In this document: positions 1,894-64,000 of the stretch, one piece after another
Layout: each line of letters opens with the position of its first letter
Numbering within the stretch: position 1 is the stretch's first letter
Source: Phyllobates terribilis
Taxonomy: Eukaryota
DNA length: 64,000 nucleotides
NCBI RefSeq assembly: GCF_046119375.1
Contig: NW_027362982.1
Coordinates: forward strand, 2,542,001-2,606,000
Reading direction: 5' to 3'
Position numbers and translations under genes: made by a program
The notes under the pieces: generated by a model
Seen by the model: the letters and a program-made list of their open reading frames with translations, nothing else
What the model was told of the DNA's origin: nothing
The model's database searches: none

Positions 1894-4488
<2,595 letters not shown>

Positions 4489-10303: not shown

Positions 10304-11698
10304 GGGGGCCGCGCGCGCCGCTCTAAAGAGTCCCCGGCCAATGACCGAAGGACCTCTCATATATAAGGCACCTCCTCCAAAATGGAGATGCCCGTGCAAG
10401 GTTGTTGCTCTGTGTACTAAACTCTGCTTCAGCCTTCAGGTCCCGCTGCCAGTCTGACTACCAGTCCAGTCTGCCAGCCTGACTACCAGTCCAGCCCGAC
10501 AGTCTGCTTAAAGCCCAGTCCGCCAGTCTGTCTATGAGCTTGGCCAGTCCGCTTACCCGGAGCCTTTACCTGCTACCTGTCTCCGCCAGCCAGTACACAC
10601 TCCAGCCCGACAGTCTGCCTACGGTCCAACCCACCAGTCTGTCTATGGTCTTGGCCAGTCTGCTTACCCGGAGTACTTACCAGTAACCTGTGGTGCCTGT
10701 CAGCCACCCTACCTGGAGGCTCCTGCCTGTTAAATGTCGTGCCCACGAGCGTGCCTACCTGGAGGCTCCTGCCTGTTACCTACCATGCCTACCAGCCTGT
10801 CTACCTGGCAGCTCCTGCCAGTTACCCGTGGTGTCCGCCAGTCCGTCTACCCGGACCATCCGTCAGCCTGCCTGCCGTACTCATCTGCTGTACCTGTCAG
10901 TCCCTGCCATCTGACCGTGGGAGTCACCTGCTCTCATACAAGGTCTGGCCCAGAGTGGCACCTGGTCCCTCTGCTCGGTCCCTCCCTGGTTCACGGAGTC
11001 GACAGCACAGAATGACTGTCCAAACTAAATCCTGCAGCTCAGTGCTACACGGCGGAGCCAAACATTTAAATACACCTTCCCACCTGCTTGTTTTCTCTCA
11101 ATATCCAGCCTCATGTTCTTTGATTCACAACTCTGGCATCGTAGATTCAGAGAAGGATTAAAATAGAGGAGCAGGTGAAAAGGTGCACTGAACTGATAGG
11201 CCACGCCAAGGGTACAGCAAGCGCCTCTACTTCGTTTGAACAGTCATGCTGTGTTGACAGAGTCACTTTAAAAAAAGACGTTTTTGCTTCTTAAAAACCT
11301 ACTCCACAGCTGCAGTTTAAAAAATACTAAATGAATCTCTGACACTGCTCTCGGTGTTTGTTATTGTCTACAATGCTGACATGACGCCAACAGCACAGCA
11401 GTCAACTGAGCCAGCGAATCCGCCTCGAGTTGACCGAGATCAACAGTGGAGCTTCAATGCGGGGAGTCAGAGAAAGGCGAGTAAAGGACAGGCTTTTTAA
11501 CAGACTGCAGACACTGGACAAAAGGTTTTCCAAAACTCAAAAAATGTCTTAACATGACAATGACATTTAAGGGGTTAATAGCACAGCTTTTTAATGGATT
11601 AAAGGTGCGAGAAAAATCAGCCCCCCACCCACTCTGAAGGACCTGCCACCATCATCTTCTACTTCATATAGTCAAAAGGTAATAAAAGTTAATACACA

Positions 11699-16490: not shown

Positions 16491-17179
16491 ATGAAGAATT
16501 TTTGAGAGTTCTTCCCCATTTACTGTTGAAATGGTTTCTGCTGAATGTCTTAACACTGTTCTTCCAATTAAATTTCTATTCTGATGAGCTGTAACACACT
16601 TGGGTTCCGCCGCTAACAAAATGCACCAATCCAAATTATGAATCATACATGAACAATGCCAATATTTTATTAATATGCTGAGAACAGACATGCATACAGA
16701 ACTGACATCAGACTGCACAGTACAGTAATAAGTGCTAGAAGAGCAATACATTGCTAACCTGAGACAATGGCATCATGTACAATAAGAACATAGATCCTTA
16801 AAGTGGTTTTATACTAGTTTAATAGGGGCACATTTTTTTTGCACAATACTGGTCTGTGGGTCTAATGACTTTAATAACAGCACGAAGAGAACGTGACTTT
16901 AGACTGAAGTCTCACTACATGGATAACATACTTTTTTTTTTCTTAAAATAATCTTACAGAATGCTACCACTAATTTCCAAGAATCTTCTAGCTATAAGAA
17001 TACTAAGGAGGACCCTGCTGTGTATCTCAGATTCAGGTAGTCTCTTGTTAAAAATGAATGGAAAGATAAGGAAACTTCTAGTGTTCTGTTCATCTGTAAG
17101 GAGATCACATATAAAATACATATAGGACGATATGTACACAGTTCTCCGGGTAGTAACACAGTTGAACGTTTCCTGTACG

Positions 17180-43215: not shown

Positions 43216-43905
43216 CTGTAAAAGATGTAATACCGTTATATAGAAAATTGGCTTCAAGTGTGAAAGTTATAGTGTTCCCCCAATTATGTTCTATTTTATG
43301 TAACTAATGAATGGCCAATTCTTTGTTACCACAAATGAATCCTGAGCAGGCTTTTCAATAGTAAAGGGGGCCTGTCATTCGATTCATGCTGCTCGAACCA
43401 CGGGCAGGATGAATCAGAGCCTGTCTGTGCGATTGCAGACAGGTAGGTTTGAAAAACCAGGCGGAGACTATTGGGAGAGACCCAGCTAATTTGATGATGT
43501 ACTCAGCTGGCTTCTTTCCGCCCCACTCCAGATGACTGAGGGAGTCCCTTATCACATCAGACTAATCACATCTCTCTCCTTATGGTTCCTGGACGTCATT
43601 TAAAATTATATTTTCTCGGAAACAAGGGAGGGTCAAGAGGAAAACATACTTTGCAGCAATCATGCACAGGGCTGTGGAGTCGGTAAGCCAAACCTCCAAC
43701 TCCACGACTCCGACTCACTCCCTTATACATGGCTCATGTTTAAGTGATAAATTTACTGTAGCACAGATTCATCTCAGCTAAAAGTCTAGACCCTTTGATC
43801 AGGAATAGGACAGACATTTATAGGACATTTCATAACTTTCCCAAATTCTTATGAAAAATATTCCCCACAAACTACATTGAACTACTGTACCCAATTTATT
43901 ATATA

Positions 43906-44516
43906 TTTTAGGTGACTCTTGGTCTTCCTTTCCTGGGGCGGTCTTCATGTGAGACAGTTTCTTTGTAGCGCTTGATGGTTTTTGCAACTGCACTTGGGGA
44001 CACTTTCAAAGTTTGCCCAATTTTTCACGCTGACTGACCTTCATTTCTTAAAGTAATGATGGCCACTTGTTTTTCTTTACTTAGCTGCTTTTTTCTTGCC
44101 ATAATACAAATTCTGACAGTCTATTCAGTAGGACTATCAGCTGTGTATCCACCTAACTTCTGCACAACACAACTGATGGTCCCAACCCCATTTATAAGGC
44201 AAGAAATCCCACTTATTAAACCTGACAGGGCACGCCTGTGAAGTGAAAACCATTTCCGGTGACTACCTCTTGAAGCTCATCAAGAGAATGCCAAGAGTGT
44301 GCAAAGCAGTCATCAAAGCAAAAGGTGGCTGCTTTGAAGAACCTAGAATATAAGACATATTTTCAGTTGTTTCACACTTTTTTGTTAAGTATATAGTTCC
44401 ACATGTGTTAACTCATAGTTTTGATGTCTTCAGTGTGAATGTACAATTTTCATAGTCATGAAAATACAGAAAAATCTTTAAATGAGAAGGTGTGTCCAAA
44501 CTTTTGGTCTGTACTG
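43906..44516 (-). mobile_element. Tc1 fragment T4 (transposase 5' end plus TIR), same family as T6
   Basis: Colinear with 49510-49900 and 62963-63173; ends TTTGGTCTGTACTG-TA; abrupt left break. Confidence 0.88.
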
Positions 44517-46702: not shown

Positions 46703-47440
46703 CTCTGACTGACGCAGCGCTCTGACTGACGCAGCCCCCTGACTGATGCAGCGCTCTGACTGACGCAGCCCCCTGACTGACACAGCCCCCTGACTGATGC
46801 AGTGCTCTGACTGATGCAGTGCTCTGACTGATGCAGCGCTCTGACTGACGCAGCGCTCTGACTGATGCAGCGCTCTGACTGACGCATCGCTGTGACTGAT
46901 GCAGCCCCCTGACTGACGCAGCCCCCTGACTGACACAGCCCCCTGACTGACGCAGCGCTCTGACTGACGCAGCGCTCTGACTGACGCAGCGCTCTGACTG
47001 ACGCAGCGCTCTGACTGGCGCAGCGCTCTGACTGACGCAGTGCTCTGACTGGGGCAACGCTCTGACTGACGTATCGCTGTGACTGACGCAGCCCCCTGAC
47101 TGACGCAGCCCCCTGACTGACACAGCGCTCTGACTGACACAGCCCCCTGACTGACGCAGCGCTCTGACTGACGCAGCGCTCTGACTGACGCAGCGCTCTG
47201 ACTGACGCATCGCTGTGACTGGCGCAGCGCTCTGACTGATGCAGCGCTCTGACTGGTGCAGCGCTCTGACTGACGCAGCCCTCTGACTGACGCAGCGCTC
47301 TGACTGACGCAGCGCTCTGACTGACGCAGCGCTCTGACTGACGCATCGCTGTGACTGGCGCAGCGCTCTGACTGACGCAGCGCTCTGACTGACGCAGCGC
47401 TCTGACTGACGCATCGCTGTGACTGGCGCAGCGCTCTGAC
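46703..47440. repeat. 17-bp minisatellite (GCAGCGCTCTGACTGAC and variants), about 43 units
   Basis: Direct reading of the array; its 51-nt periodicity produces the spurious 17-aa repeat ORFs. Confidence 0.95.
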
Positions 47441-47749
47441 TTTTATATGTATGTGCACAGCGCTGACCCACTACCCGCGTCACATGACTATGGGAGACAT
47501 ACAGGGGCCAGGTGGTAGACTTTTGGCTGGTGTAGAAATTAAAGTTTTGCCCTTTTTCCATCACAGGTGAGAAAGGCTGCAGAGTCCGGCTCCACAGTCA
47601 GGAGCCATCATAGGAGCACACAGGATGCAAAGTATGCTGGCCCTGTGACGCAGGAACACTTCCATGGAGCCAGAGGCTGGAGCTCGTAGAGACCGCGGCG
47701 GTGAGCCCTCCAGCACCCGGCCACCCCCCATGTATACACGGCCACTTAC

Positions 47750-48023
47750 ACCTCACCGGCCGCTCAGCTCTCCTGGACGCAGCACGTACACCGGGGTCAC
47801 ACAACAACCTCTCCAGCCTCAAGCACACGGCGACCGTTACCTAACCCCGCCCACAGCGACACCTGCAGCTGATTGGCTCTGGAATCTGTCACATGTCTTC
47901 ACACAGCTGGACGTAATCTCACAGCGCTGGGTTTGAAGGAGTCTCGTCCGTTCTCCTCGTCCTGTCCCGGAGCTGCGCGGAGACACCAAGAGCTGACACT
48001 ACCCCCGGGCGGACACGGTGAGT
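47750..48023. promoter_or_regulatory. Probable bidirectional promoter with divergent non-coding first exons
   Basis: GC-rich; GC box CCCCGCCC 47845-47852; CCAAT on the minus strand 47872-47876; minus-strand donors GTAAGT (47749) and GTGAGG (47756); plus-strand donor GTGAGT at 48018. Confidence 0.6.
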
Positions 48024-48180
48024 GACGTCCTGTGCTCCTTATATACCGGGGCCTGTTTCCGGCCTAAAGTGGCTGATCACAGAGAACAATAGCTTGAACG
48101 TAAAGTGACTGATACCAGAGAGCACCAGCAGGCATAGATTGCTGCAGCCAGGTCAGTGAGCTTTCATTGTTGTTTTCCAG

Positions 48181-48267
48181 GAGGAAGGAATCCTGTGTCC
48201 GCCATCACCTCTGCAGCTGGAGCTGATCCACCAGCTGTCGGAATACCTGGGAGTGCCCACTGAGCAG
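48181..48267 (+). pseudogene. MTFR2: MTFR2 first coding exon, start codon absent
   Basis: TTGTTTTCCAG acceptor and GTGAGT donor; SPLQLELIHQLSEYLGVPTEQ compared with human MTFR2 [21 protein letters not shown]; Kozak-like CCGCC followed by ATC, not ATG. Confidence 0.75.
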
Positions 48268-51221
48268 GTGAGTGGTGATCGGGCCTGGGACTGGCGCACA
48301 TGTATAGGGGCTCCAGCCTTATGTTGTACTTTATATATGGTACCAGTGATTGCTCACTGACACCCCCATGTTCCTTCATATCGCTACCCGTAGCGACCAC
48401 GCACCAATGGCAGAAAAGGAGAAGTGACCTCTCCAGCAGGACAGGGGGGCATGGGGGATTCATAGCTGAGTATACTCAGGACATACAGTACAGACCAAAA
48501 GTTTGGACACACCTTCTCATTTAAAGATTTTTCTGTATTTTCTTGACTATGAAAATTGTACATTTACACTGAAGGCATCAAAACTATGAATTAACACATG
48601 TGGAATTATATACTTAACAAAAAAGTGTGAAACAACTGAAAATATGTCTTATATTCTAGGTTCTTCAAAGTAGCCATCTTTTGCTTTGATGACTGCTTTG
48701 TACACTCTTGGCATTCTCTTGATGAGCTTCAAGAGGTAGTCACCAGAAATGATCTTCCAACAATCTTGAAAGAGTTCCCAGAGATGCTTAGAACTTGTTG
48801 GCCCTTTTGCCTTCATTCTGTGGTCCAGCTCACCCCAAACCATCTCGATTGGGTTCAGGTCTGGTGACTGTGGAGGCCAGGTCATCTGGCGTAGCACCCC
48901 ATCACTCTCCCTCTTGGTCAAATAGCCCTTACACAGCCTGGAGGTGTGTTTGGGGTCATTGTCCTGTTGAAAAATAAATGATGGTCCAACTAAACGCAAA
49001 CCGGATTGAATAGCATGCCGCTGCAAGATGCTGTGGTAGCCATGCTGGTTCAGTATGCCTTCAATTTTGAATAAATTCCCAACAGTGTCAAAAGCAAAAC
49101 ATCCCCACACCATCACACCTCCTCCTCCATGCTTCACGGTGGGAACCAGGCATGTAGAGTACAACCATTCACCTTTTCTGCGTCGCACAAAGACACAGTG
49201 GTTGGTACCAAAGATCTCAAATTTGGACTCATCAGACCAAAGCACAGATTTCCACTGGTCTAATGTCCATTGCTTGTGTTCTTTAGCCCAAACAAGTCTC
49301 TTCTGCTTGTTGCCTGTCCTTAGCAGTGGTTTCCTAACAGCTATATTCCGATGAAGGCCTGATGCACAAAGTCTACTCTTAACAGTTGTTGAAGAGATGT
49401 GTCTGCTGCTAGAACTATGTGTGGCATTGACCTGGTCTCTAATCTGAGCTGCTGTTAACCTGCGATTTCTGAGGCTGGTGACTCGGATAAACTTATCCTC
49501 AGAAGCAGAGGTGACTCTTGGTCTTCCTTTCCTGGGGCGGTCATCGTGTGAGCCAGTTTCTTTGTAGCGCTTGATAGTTTTTGCAACTGCACTTGGGGAC
49601 ACTTTCAATGTTTTCCCAATTTTTCAGACTGACTGACCTTCATTTCTTAAACTAATGATGGCCACTGGTTTTTCTTTACTTAGAATTTGTATTATGGCAA
49701 GAAAAAAGCAGCTAACAGTCTATTCAGTAGGACTATCAGCTGTGTATCCACCAGACTTCTGCACAACACAACTGATGGTCCCAACCCCATTTATAAGGCA
49801 AGAAATCCCAGTTATTAAACCTGACAGGGCACACCTGTGAAGTGAAAATCATTTCTGGTGACTACCTCTTGAAGCTCATCAAGAGAATGCCAAGAGTGTG
49901 TGACGCGCTCCCTGGGCCGTGGGGCACCCAGTGCCGGGCCGGTAGATGCTGGGGGATGTCACAGTGGCGGTGACCCGGTCCGTGACCCGGGGAGGTCAAT
50001 AAAAGGGGTTATTGATAGGGGATTTATAGTGACTCTATAAAGTTTGTGACGCCACCTGTGGTACGCGGCTAAAGGGAGCCACCGCTGCGCAGCAGGTCCT
50101 CTAGAGCTGATGTTACTGAAGCAGGGATGGTGTGGCTCTCCACAGGTAGAGCTTAGCTCCAGGGCAGTGTAGATGTTGTTGTAGGTGATGCTGGGCGTTG
50201 TAGTGCAGGGGTTGATGGTGCAGTAATAAACACAGAGGCAGTGTAGTGCAGTCCTCAGGGTCTTTACTCTCGGTTGTTGCAGTTCAGGTTACAGGTACCA
50301 GTGTAACTTCCCTCGACGTGCTGCGCTTACTCAGGGAGGGGTTCAGACCACCCCCAGTTAACTTCAGAGTACTTAACAGGACCCCCTTCTGTGTGTTCGA
50401 TCTCTCTGGCCTTCTCCCTGCACCTCACACCTAGTGCCCCCAATCCGGAACCAGCGGGCCTTGGCGGGTGACATCTGTTCCATTCCCTGGGTCCTATATG
50501 GCTACCTTCTCGGTGAGACTGGTGTGGACTTGTGGCTACAGGACATAAAATACTGTAGCCTCCAGTTTCTAGTTAGGCATAGAGTCCTCTGCTAGTTGAG
50601 GGATCGGTTCCCTTTGTACGGCCTGACCCCTCCACCGCCTGATAGATTCGGGCGTACGGGTGGCCTCCAGCACTGCCCGTACCCCTGGCGTCCTTTCCTT
50701 ATTCCTGGAGCCTTTCTCCTGCTCCTCTCTCCTTTCCGTTCAGTCCTGGGCCTCTCACCAGGCCCTCCTCCTGAGCAGAGCTCCTACAGAGCCTCTGCTC
50801 CTTCAACTTCTCCTCCTCACTGAACCTCACTTCACAAGATGGCTCCTGTTCTTATATCATCTCTCCAGTGTTCCCCTGAACTGCTTCCTCCACCCACACC
50901 CACTACATGGTTCCCCCTTACTGTGGTCCCCCCCCCACTCCTGCCTGGGACCAGGGACTGTGCTCTCCAGTAGGAGCAATCTCGCCCTGCCCTCTGTACT
51001 GGAGTAGTGTAGTGTTGGATGCAGGTGTTAGGGTCCCGAGCCGTACTCCTTCCTTACCTGAGAGTGAGACACCACACCTCTGGGTGAGATGCAGCACCTC
51101 TGTGGCGACCGAACCCTCAGGGGCACCACATACCCCCCTGGTAAAACACAGTACGTCCGCGGGCTGGAACAGAGTAAAAAACAGGGTATTTTTAAAGACA
51201 TGCAAAATTTTGGAATGCATT

Positions 51222-52462
51222 TGTGGCGCCCCTGAGGGTTCGGTCGCCACAGAGGTACTGCACCTCACCCAGAGGTGTGGTGTCTCCCTTTCTATCAGGT
51301 AAGGAGGGAGTATTGCACGGAACCCCAACACCTACATCCAACACTACACTACCCCAGGCCAGCAGGAGGGGCAAGACGCAATGTAGTTTTCTGCTGAGCC
51401 CTGACCCTGGCTGGGGTGGGGGGAACCCAAAGTTAGGGCGAACCAGTAGTGGGTGTGGGTGGAGGAGGTAGTTCATGGGAGCACTTATACAGTAGATATA
51501 TAAAAGGTAGACATTTTAGCATTGGGGAGTTGAAGAACAGTGTGTGGTTGAGTAGGAACAGTCCGGGAGCAGAGTCTCTTTAGGAGCTCTGCTCCACCAC
51601 AAAGGGCCTAGAACTGAGGCCCAGGAGGGGAGCAGGAAGTAAGCTCCGTTCTATAGAAGGGATCCTAGGGGGTACGGCGAATGCAGGCGGCACCCGTACA
51701 CCCCGAACCTGCCAAGCGTCAAGAGGATCTAGGCCGCAAGAAGGGGACCGGCCCCTGGCCCAGTCGTGCAGCTTCAAGCCTCGGCTGGAAAAACCGGAGG
51801 CTTCTGGCTTCTATAGCCACAAGCCAAACCCTCACTTCAATCCAAAGTAAGGTCAAGCAGGTCTGTGCAACTCCGACGGACAGGGGGGACCTCGCAGCAC
51901 CCGAACAGGATTCACAGTGGCAAGCGCATGGCAGGAGGGAGAAAGACCCAGCGCGAAGTCGGTCTAGAAAGGTACATAAGAAAGTGGGGTTCTGCCAGGT
52001 ACACCCAAGCTGCCTGAGGAAGGACTGAACCCCTGCCCGGTGAACGCAGAGCGACGCGGGAGGCTTGCACCAGTACAGTGCACCTGTGGACTGTCTAAGA
52101 ACTGTGAGTAAATCTTGGATGACTGCACCGAATTGCCTCCGTCCCTTCCTTTCACCAGCGCCGTTTCCCTCCCTACACTACAACGCCCAGCGCACCTGCA
52201 TTTATTCTACACTGCCCTGAGGCCTGCTCCACCTGTGGGGAGCCGTTCCATCTCAAGCTGCCCTAACACCTGCCTCAGAGGACTGTCGCAGCGCTGGTGA
52301 TCCTCACCAGACACCACAGGTGGCGGCACGACATATCCCCTATAAATATCCCCCTTTTGAGTGACCGCCCTGGGCCACGGACCGGGCCAGCCACCGTGAT
52401 ATCCCCCAAGAGCAGCCATAAGGCCCGGCTGCCGAGTACCCCACGGCCCTGGGGGCGAGTCA
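51222..52462 (+). mobile_element. Solo LTR (family D) in the 3'-UTR of E
   Basis: TGTGGCGCCC...GGCGAGTCA; perfect TSD CATT. Confidence 0.92.
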
Positions 52463-52957
52463 CATTCACATAGAAGATTATGAATATAACATTTCTTCCC
52501 TTTATGGGAGGCACATTTCTTGAACGTTACTGGTTGTCAAAACATTATAAAACACTTTTAATAACATTCTTCAACAAGTTACAGCACGATCTGTAACCGG
52601 GTGTCCATTTTCTTTAGTAAGGTGCTATTCAGTGAACATGAGGGACCCGCCCGAAAACCCTCAACGTAGGCCCTGGGCATGGCTACAGGGCATAGATGAT
52701 CCAGGTGTTGGACCACGTCTTCGGCCACGCCAAACGGGTTTTTGTTCGATGGTCTTTTTACATAAAACCAATAGGGGGCACTTTAATAAGTGCAACTATT
52801 TACACCGGAAAGTTCTTCGGTTATTCACCGTCCATAACCTGACAGTTTTTGTACCCTTTCCAGGTAACTGGATAAACACACTCACATCTCAAACTTGCAG
52901 TGTCTCTGCCATACCCCTACGGGTAACTATATACTGTTCAAGTTCCAGCTACTGTGC

Positions 52958-54330
52958 TCAGTAGTGGTGCTCCCTCCTGGGAAGCTCTTGTCCACTATAG
53001 GCTGGCCCAGCCAGGTCATCAGCGCTGTAGGATGAGGAACTGCTCACTTTCCCCACCCTGTAGACATTCAGGGCATACCAGTTCCTCTCACATCTATGCC
53101 TGGTGTAGGTGACGTAATCATCCGGGTACAAGTTCCGATCCGGATGTCCTTCTTTAAGGTGGGACTCCACGTCCCTCTGATTCACGAAAAGGTCCGTCTC
53201 GGCCTGTGGATCCCGGATGAAACCCCATCCTCCATGCTGGTTGAACTTCACTACGGTCCCTTCGGCACGGGGACCTTATGCTGACTTCCTGTCCTTGCGG
53301 GCCCTGGCCTTCTTCTCCATGTTCCGGGCCTCCAGTCTCTCCTAACGCACCCGCCGGATGTGGCACTCCTTCTCGAGCTGCTCCACTTTCCTCTTGCAGT
53401 CCTCTCTTCTGCGGGCAGCCTCTGCTTTTGTTTCTCGGGGAAACCCCATGAGGTCTTCCCCAGGGTTATCCCACTCAAATTGATCCTCCTCACTTCGGGA
53501 GACGGTGGGGGGTGGGGGAGCTGGTAATAGTGGGAGCCACTGGTCTTCCACCTCTGCGGTCCAATCCCAGGGTCGGCGTCCGTACACCCACTCGGGTGTC
53601 GGGGTAAGCGGTTCCCGTAAGGGGCCCAGGAGCGGGCCGGTGTTGCTGGTGCCCGGAGGTGACGGTTCCGAGCCCCAGAGGACGTCTAGGGCGTGCGCGC
53701 CCGGGGACAGATGACCTGGAAGGAGGGCCCGGAATGGGTCCGCGTCTTCCGCGCCCGGGGGCGGAGGGCCTTGCTGGGGTGTCAGGAGCGGGTCTGCGTC
53801 AGTAGCGCCCGGGGTCGACGGTTCCACCAGAGGGCCAGGAGCAGGTCAGCGCCTCTAGCGCCCGGGACAGGGAGGCTCCTCTTACCTGCTCCCGCGGCCG
53901 CTCTTGCGCTGCACTCTGCCTCCTGGTGCTGGTCCGGATCCGCCAAGGCTGGGGCGCTGCCTGTGCTTTGCAGCGCTGGCTGCTGCCGGTTCGCCATCCT
54001 CTCTACTATCTCCTTTTTCCAGCTGGCGATGGCATCTTGCTGGGCCCTCTCCATTCTCCCGGTCAGGTCCTCCATCCCGGCATAGAGGAACTCCGAATCC
54101 TCCCGGGACAGCTTGGAAACTACCTCCTCCAGGGTGAGGGGTGCCTCAGGTCGTAGCAGGCCGCTGGCAGGGACTCCTGGTGCACTTCCCTTCATGTTGC
54201 CTGCCAGGTGCGGTCTGTCTAGACTGGTCAAGACCACACCCTGTCTCCCAGTTTTCTTCTCTCCTCTCCCCTTTCTGGGGCGGTCCCATGGCTGCTTGCT
54301 GTCGGCCACACCCGGAGGTAGCCTCTCCAT
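52958..54330 (-). pseudogene. Element E internal ORF (about 455 aa reconstructed): Pro/Ala repeats, charged helix, C-terminal cold-shock domain (53063-53260)
   Basis: One frameshift near 53830 and two in-frame stops; GTVVKFNQHGGWGFI...DLFVNQRDV...WYALNV matches the CSD RNP1/RNP2 pattern. Confidence 0.8.
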
Positions 54331-55846
54331 ATATGGCTACCTTCTCGGTGAGACTGGTATGGACTTGTGGCTACAGGACATAAAATACTGTAGCCTCCGG
54401 GTTCTAGTTAGGCATAGAGTCCTCCGCTAGTTGAGGGATCGGTTCCCTTTGTATGGCCTGACCCCTCCACCGCCTGATAGATTCGGGCGTACGGGTGATC
54501 TCCAGCACTGCCGTACCCCTGGGGTCTTTTCCTTATTCCTGGAGCCTCTCTCCTGCTCCTCTCTCCTCTCCTTTCCTTTAAGTCCTGGGCCTCTCACCAG
54601 GCCCTCCTTCTGAGCAGAGCTCCTACAGAGCCTCTGCTCCTTCCACTTCTCCTCCTCTGACTGAACCTCGCTTCACAAGATGGCTCCTGTTCTTATGTCA
54701 TCTCTCCAGTGCTCCCCTGAACTGCTTCCTCCACCCACACCCACTACATGGTTCCCCCTTACTGTGGTCCCCCCCCACTCCAGCCAGGAACCAGGGACTG
54801 TGCTCTTGTGTCACCCTGGCCTGGATGCCACAAAATCTAATAAAGCTGTGTCTTTAGAGCAAGGGGGAGGTTCTCTAGTCAAGGGAACATTAGCATGCAA
54901 TACCTCCTGTCTCAGGCCAGTAGGGGGGCCGGCTGCCCCTATAAAAGCTGGAACTGGGGGCAGGGTTAGGGAGAACTGGACGACCTGTCTCAGGACTGAG
55001 AAGCGTCCCAGAGCAGAGAGGGACAGTTGTATTGCACCCTAAGAGGAAGTGTGGCGGTAGGAGAGCCACAAGCCAGAGACAAGAGGCGAAGTGAGCCTGT
55101 CTTGGCAGATAAAGAACTCAATTTACCAGACTTTGGTGTCTGAGGCTGTGAGGATTCCACATTCTCCAGCAGATAACCAGTCCGCAGGGGACTGTAGGTT
55201 CCTTGGCCTAAGAAGCCTGAATGCCCTGCCACAACAGAAGGGACCAGAAAAGCCGTACCAGGCCGGGAGCAGAAAGGAACCCACGTCGCAGGCGATACAG
55301 GCGAGAATACACGGAAAGCTCGGAAACGTGGGCTGTTACCCTATAAGGAGGAGATAGCCAGAAGGAGCACAGAAAGCACGGTAGGCCTACACCCTCACCC
55401 TGACAAGGGCCAATTTCCCAATTGCTCTCAGACATCCAGGTCCCCTCCTAGCCGGGACTGTTTATGGGTCAGTTTACCTGTTCTAGTAAAGACCCTGGAC
55501 TGCAACCTGTTGTCTGTGTGCTCCTTCGTGCCTCCAGCACTACCGGTACTGGGACTCTCACCACCATCACTCCCACCATCCATTATACTGCCTGGGGCCG
55601 CACTCTTCCCGTGGGGAGTCACACTACCCCAGCTGCACACCTTATCAGCCCCAGCGGTCTGCATGCAGCGGCGGTTCCTAATAACGGCAATCCACGGGTG
55701 GCGTAGTCGGACATTATCAATAGTGCATAGCAGACTATCACTGGCCTGACCACCCTGAGCCACGGAACCGGGTAGCCACTACTACCCCCATCGTTCCCCT
55801 GTTGCCCGGATCCGAGTGCCCCACGGCCCAGGGGGCGAGTCAGCTT

Positions 55847-55865
55847 TGGCGTAGTCGGCAGGATT
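55847..55865 (+). promoter_or_regulatory. tRNA-Ser primer-binding site of G4
   Basis: TGGCGTAGTCGGCAGGATT, complement of the tRNA-Ser 3' end. Confidence 0.88.
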
Positions 55866-56262
55866 GCAACCAACCCACCACAAATGGGTATTGCGTGCCT
55901 AGAAAAGACTTTGCACTTACCTGAGTGAAGTTTCCCGCCATCCGGAACCGTTTCCCGCCATTTCCACACCGTCTCCCGGCATCTTCCATCGGTTCCTGCC
56001 ATCTTCAGCCGTTTTCCCGCCATCGGACGCCATCTTCAGGACGCCGCGCGGGAAGAAGAGGGGCGTGGACGTCCAAACCGCGCGAGACCCGAAGCTCCGC
56101 CCCACGCACCGACGCTGCGCAAGGTCCTGGAAGGGAGAGAGAGCGATGCTGACGTCACCAGGACGCGACGCAAAGTCCTCGTCCGGAGCAGCACCAGCGG
56201 AGCCGCGGCCTACAGAAGAGGATCGTCGGAAGGTAGGCCACGCTTGACTAGGGGGGAGGAAG

Positions 56263-57255
56263 ATGTCGGACACGGAGGCGCCCACTACCACCAGCGCAGC
56301 TGCAGCAGCGGTGATGCCATTTTCCCTGCCCTACATTCCTGGAGCGGCCTGGCTGCCTAAGTATTCAGGGGAGCCCCATGCCCTAACTGACTTTAAGGAA
56401 AGGCTGTACAGTTTGTTCCAAGTTTACCCCCTGACAGAGGAACAGAAGGTCAGCATACTAACAGGGCAGTTAACTGGCGCAGCCCAAAGGGAGGTAAAAT
56501 CATGACCCACTGAGGAGAAAAGGACCGTGAAGGGTATTCTGGCCCGGCTGCGGGGTACCTTTGACACACGTACCTCTGCTGAAATTAAAATGAGGTTCTA
56601 TGGATGCAAGCAGCGGGCACAGGACAGCATCAGAGACTATGCCCTAAATCTGCAGGAAGCCTTGAGGGCTATCCAACAAACTGACCCTGGCAGTGTGCAG
56701 GAAACGGATAAGCTACTAACAGAACAATTCATAGAAGGTCTGCTGTCTAGCGCCCACAGGGCCCAACTGCACCTCATGTTCTTTCAGAACCCTGATCTGA
56801 CCTTTGCCCAATTTAAGGACAGGGCCATAAGGGTGCTCCGTGAACCTGCAACCAGTGGCGCTATAAACCCCCGGCGCCCTGCTCTCACCTACCACCAGGA
56901 GGCGGCGCCGTCCTCTGTGGACTCCGTGGGGGCTGAAGCACAGGCCCTGAGCCAAGCCCCGTCGAAGGATCTACACCACCAAGTCCAGGAGCTGACCAGG
57001 AGCGTTGCTGCATTGACCAGGACCGTCCAGGCATTACAAGTGGACCCGTCAAGACCCATTGAGTTGGCTTCAAGTCCGGAGGATGTCCCGTGGTGTCGAC
57101 AGAGGAGGATCCCGTCGTTCCGAGGGAGGCCCACAGACCGCTACGCGGAGGATGGACAGCCCATTTGCCGTCGATGCAACCAGCCCGGACACATTTCCAG
57201 GTACTGTAATTTAAACAGGTCCAACCTGGGGCAGAGGGCCGACCCCCAGGCATAA
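56263..57255 (+). pseudogene. G4 gag with one nonsense codon (TGA at 56503-56505, TGG in G3)
   Basis: Colinear with G3 Gag; CRRCNQPGHISRYC knuckle. Confidence 0.9.
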
Positions 57256-60200
57256 GATCACCAGGCCCTTATAATTGGCGTGATAAGTACTTTGGGGGGC
57301 GCCCGGTTTTACCCGTGGTGCTGGACGGTATCCCATTGAGCGCCTTGCTGGATACTGGGTCGCAAGTAACCACTATCCCTTATGTACTTTTTAAGCAGTA
57401 TTGGACTGATGCTGATATCACACGGTATCCAGACAGTAACTTGAGCATCATCGCCAGTAATGGCTTACCCGTGCCGCAGATGGGGTTCAAGGAGATGACC
57501 ATTAAAATTGGTAAAGTTGAACTACCAGCACAGGGAGTGATTATTGTGGACATTGACCGTCGTGAAAGTCACCCTAAAATAACTGTGGGTACTAACGTGA
57601 TTGAAAATTGTCTTTCAGAGGTAATTGTAATTCTACAACAGGTGGCGGTGAATGCTAGTTCCAGCCACAGATAGTCCTCAACAAGGAGATAAAAGCCCTG
57701 ATGAGACGGCAGCAGGTAGAACTATCTGGTGGTGAGATCGGTAGCGTAAGAATGAGTGACCCATTCCCCATTTCCATGCCTCCCAAAAGTGAAATGATGA
57801 TCTGGTGTCGGACTGCAATCGGGTTGAGAGGTAGAGACTACCAAGCCATGGTAGAACCCGTGTACTCGGACAGCAGGCCCACCATTTTGACAGCCCGGGG
57901 GGTGGTTGATGTCCGTCATGGGAGGGTGCCCGTCCGCATCCTCAACATTGGGGAGAGGGAAGTACACTTACCCAGGTACGCTACACTCGCCAAACTGTTT
58001 GTTGTCGAACACAAAGCTATCAGGGCCGTGGAACCCTTGCCTCCATCTCCACAGGCGGAGGGTAATGGCTCCCAGAAACAAAAGGAGGACTGGTGCCAGA
58101 AACTCCATGTGGGTGCTGACTCCACTCCCCTGCACCAAAAACAAGGAGTCTACCGGGTGATACAGGAGTACGAGAGAGTCTTTAGTAAGCACCTGCTAGA
58201 TTTCGGCAGAGTAAAAGGGATAGAACACCACATCCACACAGGGAGCCACCCACCAATAAAAGAGAGACACAGGCCTGTACCCTCTGCACATTATCAGAAT
58301 GCCAAGGGTATGCTAAGAGAAATGAAAGAAACTGGGGTCATTAGAGATAGCTGTAGCCCCTGGGCAGCCCCCTTGGTTCTGGTGAAAAAGAAAGACGGCA
58401 CCATGAGAATGTGCGTAGACTATAGACAAATCAACCGTATCACCCATAAAGACACATACCCGCTGCCTAGAATAGAGGAGTCTTTAGCCGCACTAAAATC
58501 AGCTAACTTCTTTTCTACTTTGGACCTTACTAGCGGGTACTGGCAGGTTCCTGTGGCAGAGGCTGACAAGGAGAAGACCGCCTTCACCACCCCGATGGGA
58601 CTGAGCGAATTCAACTGTATGCCTTTCGGGCTCTGCAACGCACCAGGGACCTTCCAGCGGCTGATGGAATGCTGTCTAGGGCACCGAAACTTCGAGACGG
58701 TCCTCCTTTACCTGGACGACGTGATCGTCTATTCGAAGACCTACGAGGGCCATCTAAAGCACCTGGCCGAGGTGTTCGAAGCCCTGGCAGGCTATGGCCT
58801 GAAGGTGAAACCATCGAAGTGTCACCTGTTGAAACCGAAGGTCCAGTACCTAGGGCACGTGGTAAGTGCGGAAGGAGTAGCCCCCGACCCTGACAAGGTC
58901 ACGGCAATCAAGAGCTGGCCAAGCCCCTCGAATATCAAAGAGGTGAGACAGTTTCTCGGGTTGGTAGGCTACTACCGAAGGTTCATCCCCGGGTTCACTA
59001 AGATGGCAGCTCCTATGCAGGACCTCCTGATTGGACAGTCTAAGTCCAGAAGTCAAAAGCCACCCTTCAAGTGGGATAAACCGGAAGAGGAGTCCTTCCG
59101 CCAGCTAAAGATTGCCCTCACAGGGGATGAGATCCTGGCTTACCCTGATTATGGCCAGCCTTTCATTCTCCACACAGACGCCAGTAATGTGGGACTGGGA
59201 GCCGTACTGTCCCAAAACCAACAGGGCAGAGAAAGGGTGATCGCGTACGCCAGCCGGAAGCTGAGGCCCACCGAGAGGAACCCGGAGAATTACAGCTCCT
59301 TCAAGCTAGAATTCTTGGCGGTGGTGTGGGCCGTGACGGAACGCTTCAAGCATTACCTGGCCTCTGCAAAGTTCACCGTGTACATGGACAACAACCCGTT
59401 AACACACCTGGACAATGCAAGACTGGGTGCCCTAGAACAGCGGTGGATGGCCCGTCTCTCCAATTACGACTTCGTGATCAAGTATCGGGCAGGCAAAACC
59501 AATGCCAACGCTGATGCCCTATCGAGAATGCCTCACTTACCTGAAGGTGACGAAGACCCAGAAGAGCTGGAGGAGGTAGAACTCCCCGCGTTTCACCGGT
59601 ATGGAGCCGCTCAATACTCCCACCACGTGAAGGAGGAGGATCTAACAACCATGATGATCAATCCCCTACATCACCACATCTGGGCCGAGACCCAAGATAG
59701 TGACCCTGCCATCCGCCTGGTGAAAGATCTGCTGACCCAGGAAGATGCCCGCATAGATCCGGATGCTCCAGAGGAAGCCAAGCAGCTATGGAAAGAGAAG
59801 AGCAAGCTGTTCCTCTATGAAGGCAAGCTGTGCAGAAGGATTGTCAACCACCGGACGCACTAGCTGACCTGGCAAGTCGTGGTCCCAAGGCGGGTTGCAG
59901 CTATGGTCCTGGGGGCTTACCATGACAGAGCGGGGCACTTCGGTTGGAAGAAACTGGAGTTCCTGCTAAGAGGATGGTTCTTTTGGGTCGGCATGAGAGG
60001 GGCTGTAGAGAAGTGGTGCAGAGACTGTGGCCCTTGTCACCTAAGGAGGAAGGACCGTGCCAGCCAGAAGACACCCTTGAGGCCCATCATCACCACGCAG
60101 CCTCTTGAGCTGGTAGCTCTGGACCACGTCAAATTGGCTCCAAGCCGGTCAGGATACATCTATGCGCTGACAATCGTGGACCACTATTCCCGTTTTCTAG

Positions 60201-61381
60201 TGGTAGTCCCGGTGAAAGACTTGACAGCCCAAATGGCGGCCAGAGCCTTCCAGCAATACTTCTGCCGTCCACACGGGTATCTGGAACAGGTCCTGACAGA
60301 CCAGGGTCCAGCGTTCGAAGCTGAAATCTTCCAGGAGTTCTGCAACCTCTATGGCTGTAAGAAGATTCGTATAACGCCTTACCACCCACAAACCAACAGG
60401 ATGTGTGAGAAAATGAACAATATAGTCATTGATCTCCTGAAGACGTTGCCCCTGGAGGAACGCAGCCTGTGGCCAGAAAAACTGCCGGACCTGATAGACT
60501 TATACAATCATATCCCGGTGAATGCTACCAACTGCACCCCGGCTTACCTGATGCGAGCCAGACCAGGTAAGCTGCCCGTAGACCTGGAGATGGGAGTCCT
60601 GACGCCTGAGGACACCTCCCCGGATGCGGACTGGGATACGGAAAGACAACTGCAGTACAAGAAGGTACAGGAGAGTGTGGAGAGGAGCCTGGCCCAGGTG
60701 AGAGAACGGCAAGAAAGCCTCTTCAACCAACACGCCCCTGCTGGTCCCCTAGAACCTGGTGAGCAGGCCCTGAAGCGGAAGAGAAGGCTACATAAGTTGG
60801 ACGACCAGTGGGAAAGGGAACCCTACACCGTACTGCAGTCTGATCACGTCAACCCGAAGGTGTGCGTGATCACCAAGGACGGAGGTGAAACCACTAGCAC
60901 CGTCTCCAGAGACCACCTCAAAAGATGCCCCGAGCAACTCCGTAGTGCAGAAGAGGATCAGAGTGACCTTGAACCCGCAGAGGACAAGGAAGAAATGATC
61001 AGCACCGTTCTCGGAGAGTTCCCTCAGTCCTGGACTCGCATAAATGATGCCATAGTGGTACCCGTCCTGCATTTCCTGCAACCGGCACAGCAACAACCAA
61101 CACCAGAGCCGGAAGGTGAAGAGGAGCAAGCGGTTCCAGAGGCAGAAGAGCCTGTACTAGCAGCCCAGGAGAGTCAACCCTCTGCTGACATTGAGCCTGC
61201 CATGCCTGCGGTAAGCCAAAGGACCCGCAGACAGCTGCCTGCCCTACCTGTACACCCAGCTGGTAGCTGTACCCCTAACGCTAGTGGGGAAAGTCAGGTC
61301 AGTCCACCACCAGACAGTGGGTTAAGGAGGTCAACCAGGAGCACAAAGGGGCAGATACCCGCTCGCTGGAGAAAACTGTAA
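57210..61381 (+). pseudogene. G4 pol (PR-RT-RH-INT) with one frameshift near 57680 and a stop at 59861-59863
   Basis: LLDTGSQVT, YLDDVIVY, HTDASNVGLGAV, HDRAGHFG...CGPC, VLTDQGPAFE. Confidence 0.95.
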
Positions 61382-63326
61382 ATAACCTTGTTGCCAAATG
61401 TTGAAATCTTTGCCAAGTTACCTGCATGATTGTTAATAGTGTATTTCAGTTTCTTGCAGTTACCGTACGGACTCAAAGGTTATGGACTTTTTTATAACCG
61501 GGACCATGTATGGACTGCGTTCGGAGCCTAACCCAGGAATGAACTAAGACTGTAAAGGATTTGGGGTAGGACAGACCCCCCCCACCTGGTTAAGGCTCCC
61601 CGTTGTGCTGGTGATATGGACACCCGGTCACAGACCACACTGTGACCTTAAGAACTCAATCTGTGCGTCGTTTGTCTATTAATGTTTTATAGTCATGTAT
61701 ATTATCTTTGTTTATTGTTTAGTCCCGGAGTACTAAATTTTACTAGGGGGGAATGTGTCACCCTGGCCTGGATGCCACAAAATCTAATAAAGCTGTGTCT
61801 GAGAGCAAGGGGGAGGTTCTCTAGTCAGGGGAACATTAGCATGCAATACCTCCTGTCTCAGGCCAGTAGGGGGAGCCGGCTGCCCCTATAAAAGCTGGAA
61901 CTGGGGGCAGGGTTAGGGAGAACTGGACGACCTGTCTCAGGACGGTGAAGCGTCCCAGAGCAGAGAGGGACAGTTGTATTGCACCCTAAGAGGAAGTGTG
62001 GCGGTAGGAGAGCCACAAGCCAGAGACAAGAGGCGAAGTGAGCCTGTCTTGGCAGATAAAGAACTCAATTTACCAGACTTTGGTGTCTGAGGCTGTGAGG
62101 ATTCCACATTCTCCAGCAGATAACCAGTCCGCAGGGAACTGTATGTTCCTTGGCCTAAGAAGCCTGAAGGCCCTGCCACAACAGAAGGGACCAGAAAAGC
62201 CGTACCAGGCCGGGAGCAGAAAGGAACCCACGTCGCAGGCCATACAGGCGAGAATACACGGAAAGCTCGGAAACGTGGGCTGTTACCCTATAAGGAGGAG
62301 ATAGCCAGAAGGAGCGCAGAAAGCACGGTAGGCCTACACCCTCACCCTGACCAGGGCCAATTTCCCAATTGCTCTCAGACATCCAGGTCCCCTCCTAGCC
62401 GGGACTGTTTATGGGTCAGTTTACCTGTTCTAGTAAAGACCCTGGACTGCAACCTGTTGTCTGTGTGCTCCTTCGCGCCTCCAGCACTACCGGTACTGGG
62501 ACTCTCACCACCATCACTCCCACCATCCATTATACTGCCCTGGGGAAGCACTCTTCCCGTGGGGAGTCACACTACCCCAGCTGCACACCTCATCAGCCCC
62601 AGCGGTCTGCATGCAGTGGCGGTTCCTAATAACGGCAATCCACGGGTGGCGTAGTCGGACATTATCAATAGTGCATAGCAGACTATCACTGGCCTGACCA
62701 CCCTGAGCCACGGAACCGGGTAGCCACTACTACCCCCATCGTTCCCCTGTTGCCCGGATCCGAGTGCCCCACGGCCCAGGGGGCGAGTCACTCTCCCTTA
62801 GGAGCAATCTCGCCCTGCCCTCTGTACTGGAGTAGTGTAGTGTTGGATGCAGGTGTTAGGGTCCCGAGCCGTACTCCTTCCTTACCTGAGAGTGAGACAC
62901 CACACCTCTGGGTGAGATGCAGCACCTCTGTGGCGACCAAACCCTCAGGGGCGCCACATGTGCAAAGCAATCATCAAAGGAAAAAGGTGGCTACTTTGAA
63001 GAAACTAGAATATAAGATATTTTCTGTTGTTTCACACTTTTTTGTTAAGTATATAATTCCACTTGTGTTAATTCATAGTTTTGCCTTCAGTGTGAATGTA
63101 CAATTTTCATAGTCAAGAAAATACAGAAAAATATTTTAATGAGAAGGTGTGTCCACACTTTTGGTCTGTACTGTATGTAAAATACAGCAAAAACCCTTTA
63201 CCAGGTCCACTGCCCTGGCAATAAGCTGTGTAAGAAACTTTGTAATGTATTTGAGAGAAAAGTGCTTCTTTCTCCACTTATGAGCCACTTCATCTCCTCC
63301 CCCTTCCTCCTAAAGTTATCATACTG

Positions 63327-63688: not shown

Positions 63689-64000
63689 ATCTGTCTCAGT
63701 GAAAACAAGACAGACTGATAGCTCACTGAGGGATCTGATTACAGCTGTCTTTTAAAGTCTATGGAAAGGGAAGATCTGAGAAAGAACCAGAGACATGCAT
63801 AGACCCGTGCTGCTGCTTGCTTTCTAGGAAGTGTATAACTAAACTTAGGTAAAGGCCTGTCAGCCATCACTAAGTGTACATCATGGGGTGGCGAGGGTCT
63901 CATGAAGACAACCCCCAACCATGTGGCTTTTCTGGCATATAGATGTTATAGGCGACATGTATGTGCCAAAGTGAAGAGCCAATCCGTAAGAAGGACTCTG

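Follow-up and report, generated by a model that had tools for sequence, protein, structure and literature searches.

The interval at positions 47750–48267 of the window (the whole 64,000-nt stretch of DNA analysed here) is, with a probability that we put at about 0.8, a duplicated compact bidirectional promoter of the armc1l/MTFR2-type gene pair of bony vertebrates, together with exons 1 and 2 of the mtfr2 copy. It is the orthologue of a copy on chromosome 1 of Phyllobates terribilis and not a working pair. The plus-strand half of the duplicated promoter fires, and the mtfr2-side transcript is spliced from exon 1 through exon 2 to exon 3. Throughout, the parent locus is that on chromosome 3 of P. 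terribilis, and not one from the window's own species.

The interval lies in about 1 kb of unique DNA between a 17-bp satellite (46703–47441) and a Tc1-like insertion (from ~48483). Direct reading of the sequence places a GC box, CCCCGCCC, at 47845–47852 and an ATTGG motif (an inverted CCAAT box) at 47872–47876, both within a conserved core at 47817–47908, where the P. terribilis parent and Anomaloglossus share 88% identity, against 68–69% for the flanking exon-1 and intron sequence. On either side, donors of the two strands face outward at a distance of 268 bp: GTGAGT on the plus strand, read directly from 48018, and GTAAGT on the minus strand, at 47749–47744. The latter is retained in the alignment with the parent, the chromosome-1 copy and Anomaloglossus, and puts the end of a putative non-coding first exon of the armc1l copy (minus strand, 47750–47850, upper bound approximate) at 47750. 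There is no TATA box between the donors, the sole TATA-like string being in intron 1 of the mtfr2 copy, and the observed/expected CpG ratio is 0.6–0.8 around the promoter compared with 0.48 for the whole window. A further CCAAT box, set in C-C-A-A-T-C-A-G-A-G, occurs in the parent and in Anomaloglossus and is the better conserved of the two. According to the alignment, a 21-bp deletion at ~47908/47909 took it out in the window and in the chromosome-1 copy of P. terribilis; neither the parent nor Anomaloglossus has this deletion.

The first-pass annotation described this arrangement as two divergent, non-coding first exons around a GC box and a CCAAT box, on a promoter of about 150 bp. Both boxes and the outward-facing donors are there, while the minus-strand exon has no RNA contig, and the plus-strand exon is not strictly non-coding in Phyllobates, where it contains an upstream ATG, which the parent has in frame with MTFR2. 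Since no RNA was found on the armc1l-side exon and Logan contigs give no start sites, we infer, and do not observe, that the corresponding core of ~200 bp, of the GC-box/NF-Y type, fires in both directions in intact loci, and likewise that the divergent starts are spaced by ~150 bp.

On the plus strand, exon 1 of the mtfr2 copy (the 5' leader) spans 47891–48017, with RNA contigs reaching at least 47891. It is followed by a 163-nt GT..AG intron at 48018–48180, whose acceptor AG at 48179–48180 is confirmed by an RNA junction, and by an 87-nt exon 2 at 48181–48267, which consists of 29 open codons without an ATG and precedes a GTGAGT donor, as established by alignment and RNA. The MTFR2-like exon that had been proposed 164 bp downstream of the plus-strand donor is thus in place, with an intron shorter by one nucleotide. 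Relative to both P. terribilis loci, ~87 bp are deleted from this intron near 48051. Intron 2 begins at 48268 and, by colinearity with the chromosome-1 (L002) and chromosome-3 (L006) loci of P. terribilis, extends to the end of the window at 64000. Exon 3 corresponds to L002 2205–2104 and L006 1366–1265, about 850 bp past the window end, which is why a pattern search for the next MTFR exon within the window returned none. Intron 2 also harbors a Tc1-like element (~48483–49900) and LTR retroelements (51131–62791, including gag-pol at ~56250–61380), the LTR retroelements being missing from the P. terribilis chromosome-1 locus.

The exon at 48181–48267 aligns with the first coding exons of the homologous genes of Anomaloglossus, the P. 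terribilis parent, Xenopus tropicalis and Chanos, with the donor at the same codon. Those exons begin with M-S-L-L or M-P-L-L and have the core L-E-Y-L-G-V/I-P in common with the window exon. The alignment at the nucleotide level to the annotated first coding exon of the divergent neighbor of armc1l bears out the assignment of this exon to an MTFR2-type gene and to no other. The choice of MTFR2 over MTFR1 follows from synteny and from a presumed similarity to the N-termini of the human proteins; the name was not given by any tool, a search with a Chanos MTFR exon having produced no usable match. A search of the window exon against PF05308 (Mito_fiss_reg) gave no match, because the profile leaves out the first 21 residues and starts only in the following exon, as seen in X. 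tropicalis, whose exons match profile positions 4–35 and 41–73 (E = 8e-12). The Chanos product also carries PF05308. As a separate observation, the start of the conserved domain in frog mtfr2 seems to be encoded by two related exons in tandem (L003:4786–5070 and 4215–4403 in X. tropicalis), the first of which begins with L-V-P-I/V-W-E and has no Pfam match, while the next matches PF05308 positions 4–35. In RNA of the window's organism, the exon spliced onto the first coding exon is the leading member of this tandem pair (L006:1265–1366, L002:2104–2205); in Chanos there is a single exon.

The only competing candidate for the exon at 48181–48267 was another gene such as a METTL16-like RNA methyltransferase, suggested by a weak match to the Pfam family Methyltransf_10 (E = 0.02–0.07, below the curated cut-off). 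This identity was rejected, and we give it practically no chance of being correct: at the nucleotide level the exon has its orthologue in the first coding exon of armc1l's Mito_fiss_reg neighbor, the RNA shows it joined to the following mtfr2 exon, and the start of PF05308 in that following exon accounts for the missing domain match. A very unlikely, if less remote, alternative is that the mtfr2 copy is still a working gene which uses another start, either the ATG that lies upstream, in exon 1, or a CUG in exon 2 as a near-cognate start codon. In its favor, the transcript is made and correctly spliced, the NCBI model of the parent (436 aa) starts at the same upstream ATG, and the P. terribilis chromosome-1 copy keeps that ATG in frame, with exons 1–3 open.

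The reading frames themselves, which were followed by exon lengths and by translating single exons, each exon also being searched singly, speak against a working mtfr2 copy. According to the alignment, the canonical mtfr2 ATG was taken out by a 16-bp deletion between 48207 and 48208 that is common to the window and L002; across the homologous start, the parent reads M-P-L-L-L-E-L-I-R-Q-L-L-E-Y-L-G-V-P-T-E-Q. The upstream site in exon 1, at 47937–47939, is AGG in the assembly and ATG in the RNA. In the parent, the upstream ATG is in frame with MTFR2 (80 + 40 nt), which explains the length of the NCBI model, whose annotated CDS starts at the homologous ATG. In both copies this frame is preserved (81 + 24 nt), as exon 1 carries a +1 insertion while exon 2 lacks the 16 bp. 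It runs open through exons 1–3 in the P. terribilis chromosome-1 copy, where no protein-coding gene is called on the mtfr2 side. In the window, however, the upstream frame is ended after 19 codons by a TGA at 47994–47996, a position at which the RNA contigs agree with the assembly. From there on, judging from the P. terribilis copy, the window transcript has no ATG for the MTFR2 frame until late in exon 3, and a protein starting at the end of that exon would drop the conserved N-terminal region. The mtfr2 copy is therefore without a start codon in the window, the canonical ATG being deleted and the upstream frame closed, and its partner, the armc1l copy, is clearly dead.

The body of this armc1l pseudogene was located on the minus strand at 17164–43221 by tblastn with three armc1l proteins (P0001, P0060 and P0076), one of which, that of Ranitomeya imitator (P0001), was also returned by phmmer with one window exon. 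Exons 2 (43221–43126), 3 (41945–41757), 4 (41572–41429), 5 (17713–17630) and 6 (17343–17164) are recognizable, with in-frame stops in exons 2, 4 and 6, so that there are at least three in total. The stop that follows D-Y-L-L-E-E is also found in the P. terribilis chromosome-1 protein (P0076). No match to the first coding exon was found anywhere in the window. The piece at 43667–43912 corresponds to the sequence that follows armc1l exon 1 in L002 and L006; here it is inverted and exon 1 is gone, which points to a rearrangement or else to an inverted repeat element that the loci share. Intron 1 of the armc1l copy contains the satellite mentioned above, for which Tandem Repeats Finder reports a period of 17 and 43.5 copies. 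The array is 0.74 kb long in the window, and its counterpart in the P. terribilis chromosome-1 copy (L002:7943–9893) measures 1.95 kb. In the parent there are only ~14 bp of it (L006 ~11018–11032), which indicates that it expanded after the duplication.

Two armc1l loci are present in P. terribilis, an intact one on chromosome 3 (P0060/P0177, in L006) and one on chromosome 1 with a truncated 238-aa model (P0076, in L002, record JBJBSG010000001.1). The window is colinear with the chromosome-1 locus at 95–97.5% identity and with the chromosome-3 locus at ~85–94%, the latter over armc1l, the promoter and mtfr2 exons 1–2 and into intron 2. Over ~1.9 kb of aligned blocks, it is closest to the chromosome-1 copy (97.7% identity), followed by the parent (96.1%) and by Ranitomeya and Anomaloglossus (~85%). 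A maximum-likelihood tree has the topology (Anomaloglossus,(Ranitomeya,(parent,(window, chromosome-1 copy)))), with support of 100/100, which places the duplication in the Phyllobates lineage, before the split between the window's species and P. terribilis. What was found corresponds to an unprocessed duplicated pseudogene: the introns are kept, an intact parent exists elsewhere (shown in P. terribilis), and there are disabling mutations. It had been proposed that the interval is the paralogous duplicate of a linked mitochondrial module. An intact pair does exist; the window itself is a lineage-specific copy of it in which both genes are disabled. A segmental duplication carried the whole head-to-head unit (armc1l, the promoter and at least mtfr2 exons 1–3) from a chromosome-3-type to a chromosome-1-type locus, after the split from Ranitomeya. 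Afterwards one CCAAT box and the start codon of mtfr2 disappeared from the copy; in the window's species the first coding exon of armc1l is gone as well. The P. terribilis parent further contains a 1.17-kb segment (L006:9596–10769), which neither the two copies nor Anomaloglossus have; the alternative first exon of armc1l isoform X1, with its ATG, comes from this segment, possibly an exonised insertion.

Transcription of the duplicate is documented by Logan contigs from two runs (X15 and X13), which belong to two studies of the same organism. The comparison covered 1041 bases outside the 17-bp satellite, and contigs of this type cannot show starts, ends or absence. The contigs of both runs join 48017 to 48181 across the 163-nt intron. 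They cover exon 1 from 47891 or 47913 to 48016, across exon 2 they show 0 differences from the window, and a contig tail of 30 letters matches the chromosome-1-type exon 3 exactly, with 1 mismatch to the parent. The parent differs from the window by a dozen positions in exon 1 and by the 16-bp segment and several further bases in exon 2, so that the contigs represent spliced transcripts from this copy or a near-identical one. At 47938, where G stands in the assembly, the contigs of both runs have T, meaning that the upstream ATG exists in the sequenced animals; the discrepancy could reflect an assembly error, or the contigs could stem from another allele or a further near-identical copy. No RNA contig was found over 47617–47861, the region of the putative minus-strand armc1l exon, in these Logan contigs, from which absence is not provable. 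The remaining core, with its GC box and one inverted CCAAT box, still drives transcription of the plus strand, and the product in the window is most likely a non-coding pseudogene RNA from a relic promoter that is still active.

Contigs from a third run (X9, labelled as another organism) were also found on 47442–47684 and 48048–48240. They show no base substitutions relative to the window, carry a 3-base ATG insertion after 47502, and have a high depth for a small run. One of them leaves the window exactly at 47684 and continues into a sequence found in none of the fetched loci.

In intact loci, armc1l adjoins an mtfr2-type gene in divergent orientation, as had been anticipated, and the arrangement is annotated in four species. 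In the milkfish Chanos chanos, a gene with a 350-aa product carrying PF05308 lies head-to-head with armc1l, with a gap of 1.5 kb between the CDS starts. The corresponding gene of X. tropicalis, whose exons match PF05308, encodes 402 aa and has a gap of 4.9 kb, and that of Anomaloglossus baeobatrachus encodes 410 aa with a gap of 4.5 kb. On chromosome 3 of P. terribilis, the 436-aa gene lies 664 bp from the ATG of armc1l isoform X1. A word search of annotations finds armc1l in a salamander and in numerous frogs and ray-finned fishes, and no amniote appears among the best 120 matches. Public annotation shows the arrangement of armc1l and mtfr2 plainly, and gene pairs of this class are well known; no paper was found on armc1l, nor on ARMC1 and MTFR1 in connection with synteny, head-to-head orientation or a bidirectional promoter. 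In Ranitomeya, the 10-kb flank upstream of armc1l is made of a 53-bp satellite. A 7.5-kb array with a period of 53 bp (L001:2400–9900) lies upstream of the armc1l ATG exon and resembles the armc1l exon-1 donor region (window 47707–47768), and a 15-mer at window 47744–47758 is repeated in dozens of its units.

It could be argued that the two genes are merely inherited neighbors with separate promoters, the core serving mtfr2 only while armc1l starts elsewhere. The RNA seen is all from the plus strand, isoform X1 of P. terribilis armc1l starts at another exon ~0.5 kb away, and the gaps between coding sequences in other species amount to 1.5–4.9 kb. We nevertheless regard separate promoters as rather improbable: the minus-strand GTAAGT donor, 95–100 bp from the GC box, is kept from Phyllobates to Anomaloglossus, the orientation and adjacency of the genes have held from teleosts to frogs, and the exon of isoform X1 is located in the 1.17-kb segment that Anomaloglossus and the copies do not have.

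Bidirectional promoters of vertebrates are CpG-rich and TATA-less, with GC boxes (Sp1) and CCAAT boxes (NF-Y). The window resembles them in its divergent genes, the donor spacing of 268 bp, the GC box, the inverted CCAAT box, the lack of a TATA box between the donors and the raised CpG ratio, as well as in a core that is likewise kept between frog families. The copy differs from them in that one CCAAT box and both protein products are lost, and in that RNA is seen in the plus direction only. Compared with the intact armc1l–mtfr2 pairs, the window has the same gene order, orientation, first-exon structure and core, with 96% identity to the P. terribilis parent in the gene-body blocks, but it differs by the 21-bp and 16-bp deletions, the missing armc1l exon 1, the stops, the satellite and the transposons. 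Like other transcribed unprocessed pseudogenes, it has retained its introns, has its parent elsewhere, carries disabling mutations and was copied along with an active promoter; unlike them, it is a copy of a whole bidirectional unit of two genes, of which only one side is seen spliced.

As to the function of the intact pair, human ARMC1 and MTFR1 are divergent neighbors, probably some 10 kb apart, and the first-pass annotation considered the armc1l–mtfr2 pair to mirror them. A mirror pair at a comparably short distance was not recovered: within 10 kb of the ARMC1 coding region, neither an MTFR exon nor a called gene was found in any of four species, namely a teleost (L007), an eagle (L008/L009), a lamprey contig (L010) and Xenopus laevis (L011/L012). 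If ARMC1 and MTFR1 are neighbors, they are thus less tightly paired than armc1l and mtfr2, and the tight pairing is documented here for armc1l–mtfr2 only. In ARMC1L, the aspartate of M-R-D-R-S (P0060) presumably corresponds, by eye, to the interface residue D37 of ARMC1.

That ARMC1 works with MTFR proteins and MIRO at mitochondria, as the first-pass annotation had stated, was published in 2025: ARMC1 assembles MTFR1, MTFR2 and MTFR1L with MIRO, binds two conserved MTFR helices and is required for MTFR stability, while gene order and genomic linkage of ARMC1 and MTFR are not discussed (PMC11980836). Set against this complex, the intact pair encodes an ARMC1 paralogue and one of the three MTFR clients. 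The output of armc1l and mtfr2 would be coupled by the shared core in the intact loci, with MTFR2 as the presumed client of ARMC1L. More tentatively, and with less than even odds in our judgment, ARMC1- and MTFR-type genes may have stood head-to-head since before the vertebrate genome duplications, encoding an obligate complex that needs matched dosage, with ARMC1L as a dedicated stabiliser of MTFR2 in fishes and amphibians. If this were true, the Phyllobates duplicate would show the fate of a copied unit, in which both halves decay together and the promoter outlives them.

No general principle is changed by the finding of the armc1l–mtfr2 pair. The window is a small natural experiment: both coding regions are decaying, and one arm of the promoter still works after the loss of a CCAAT box. 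An ARMC1 paralogue without prior study that lies head-to-head with mtfr2 from teleosts to frogs leads to a cheap and testable prediction, namely that the two are a partner pair with coupled expression, for which zebrafish and Xenopus are the obvious systems, since ARMC1L appears to be absent from the amniote matches.
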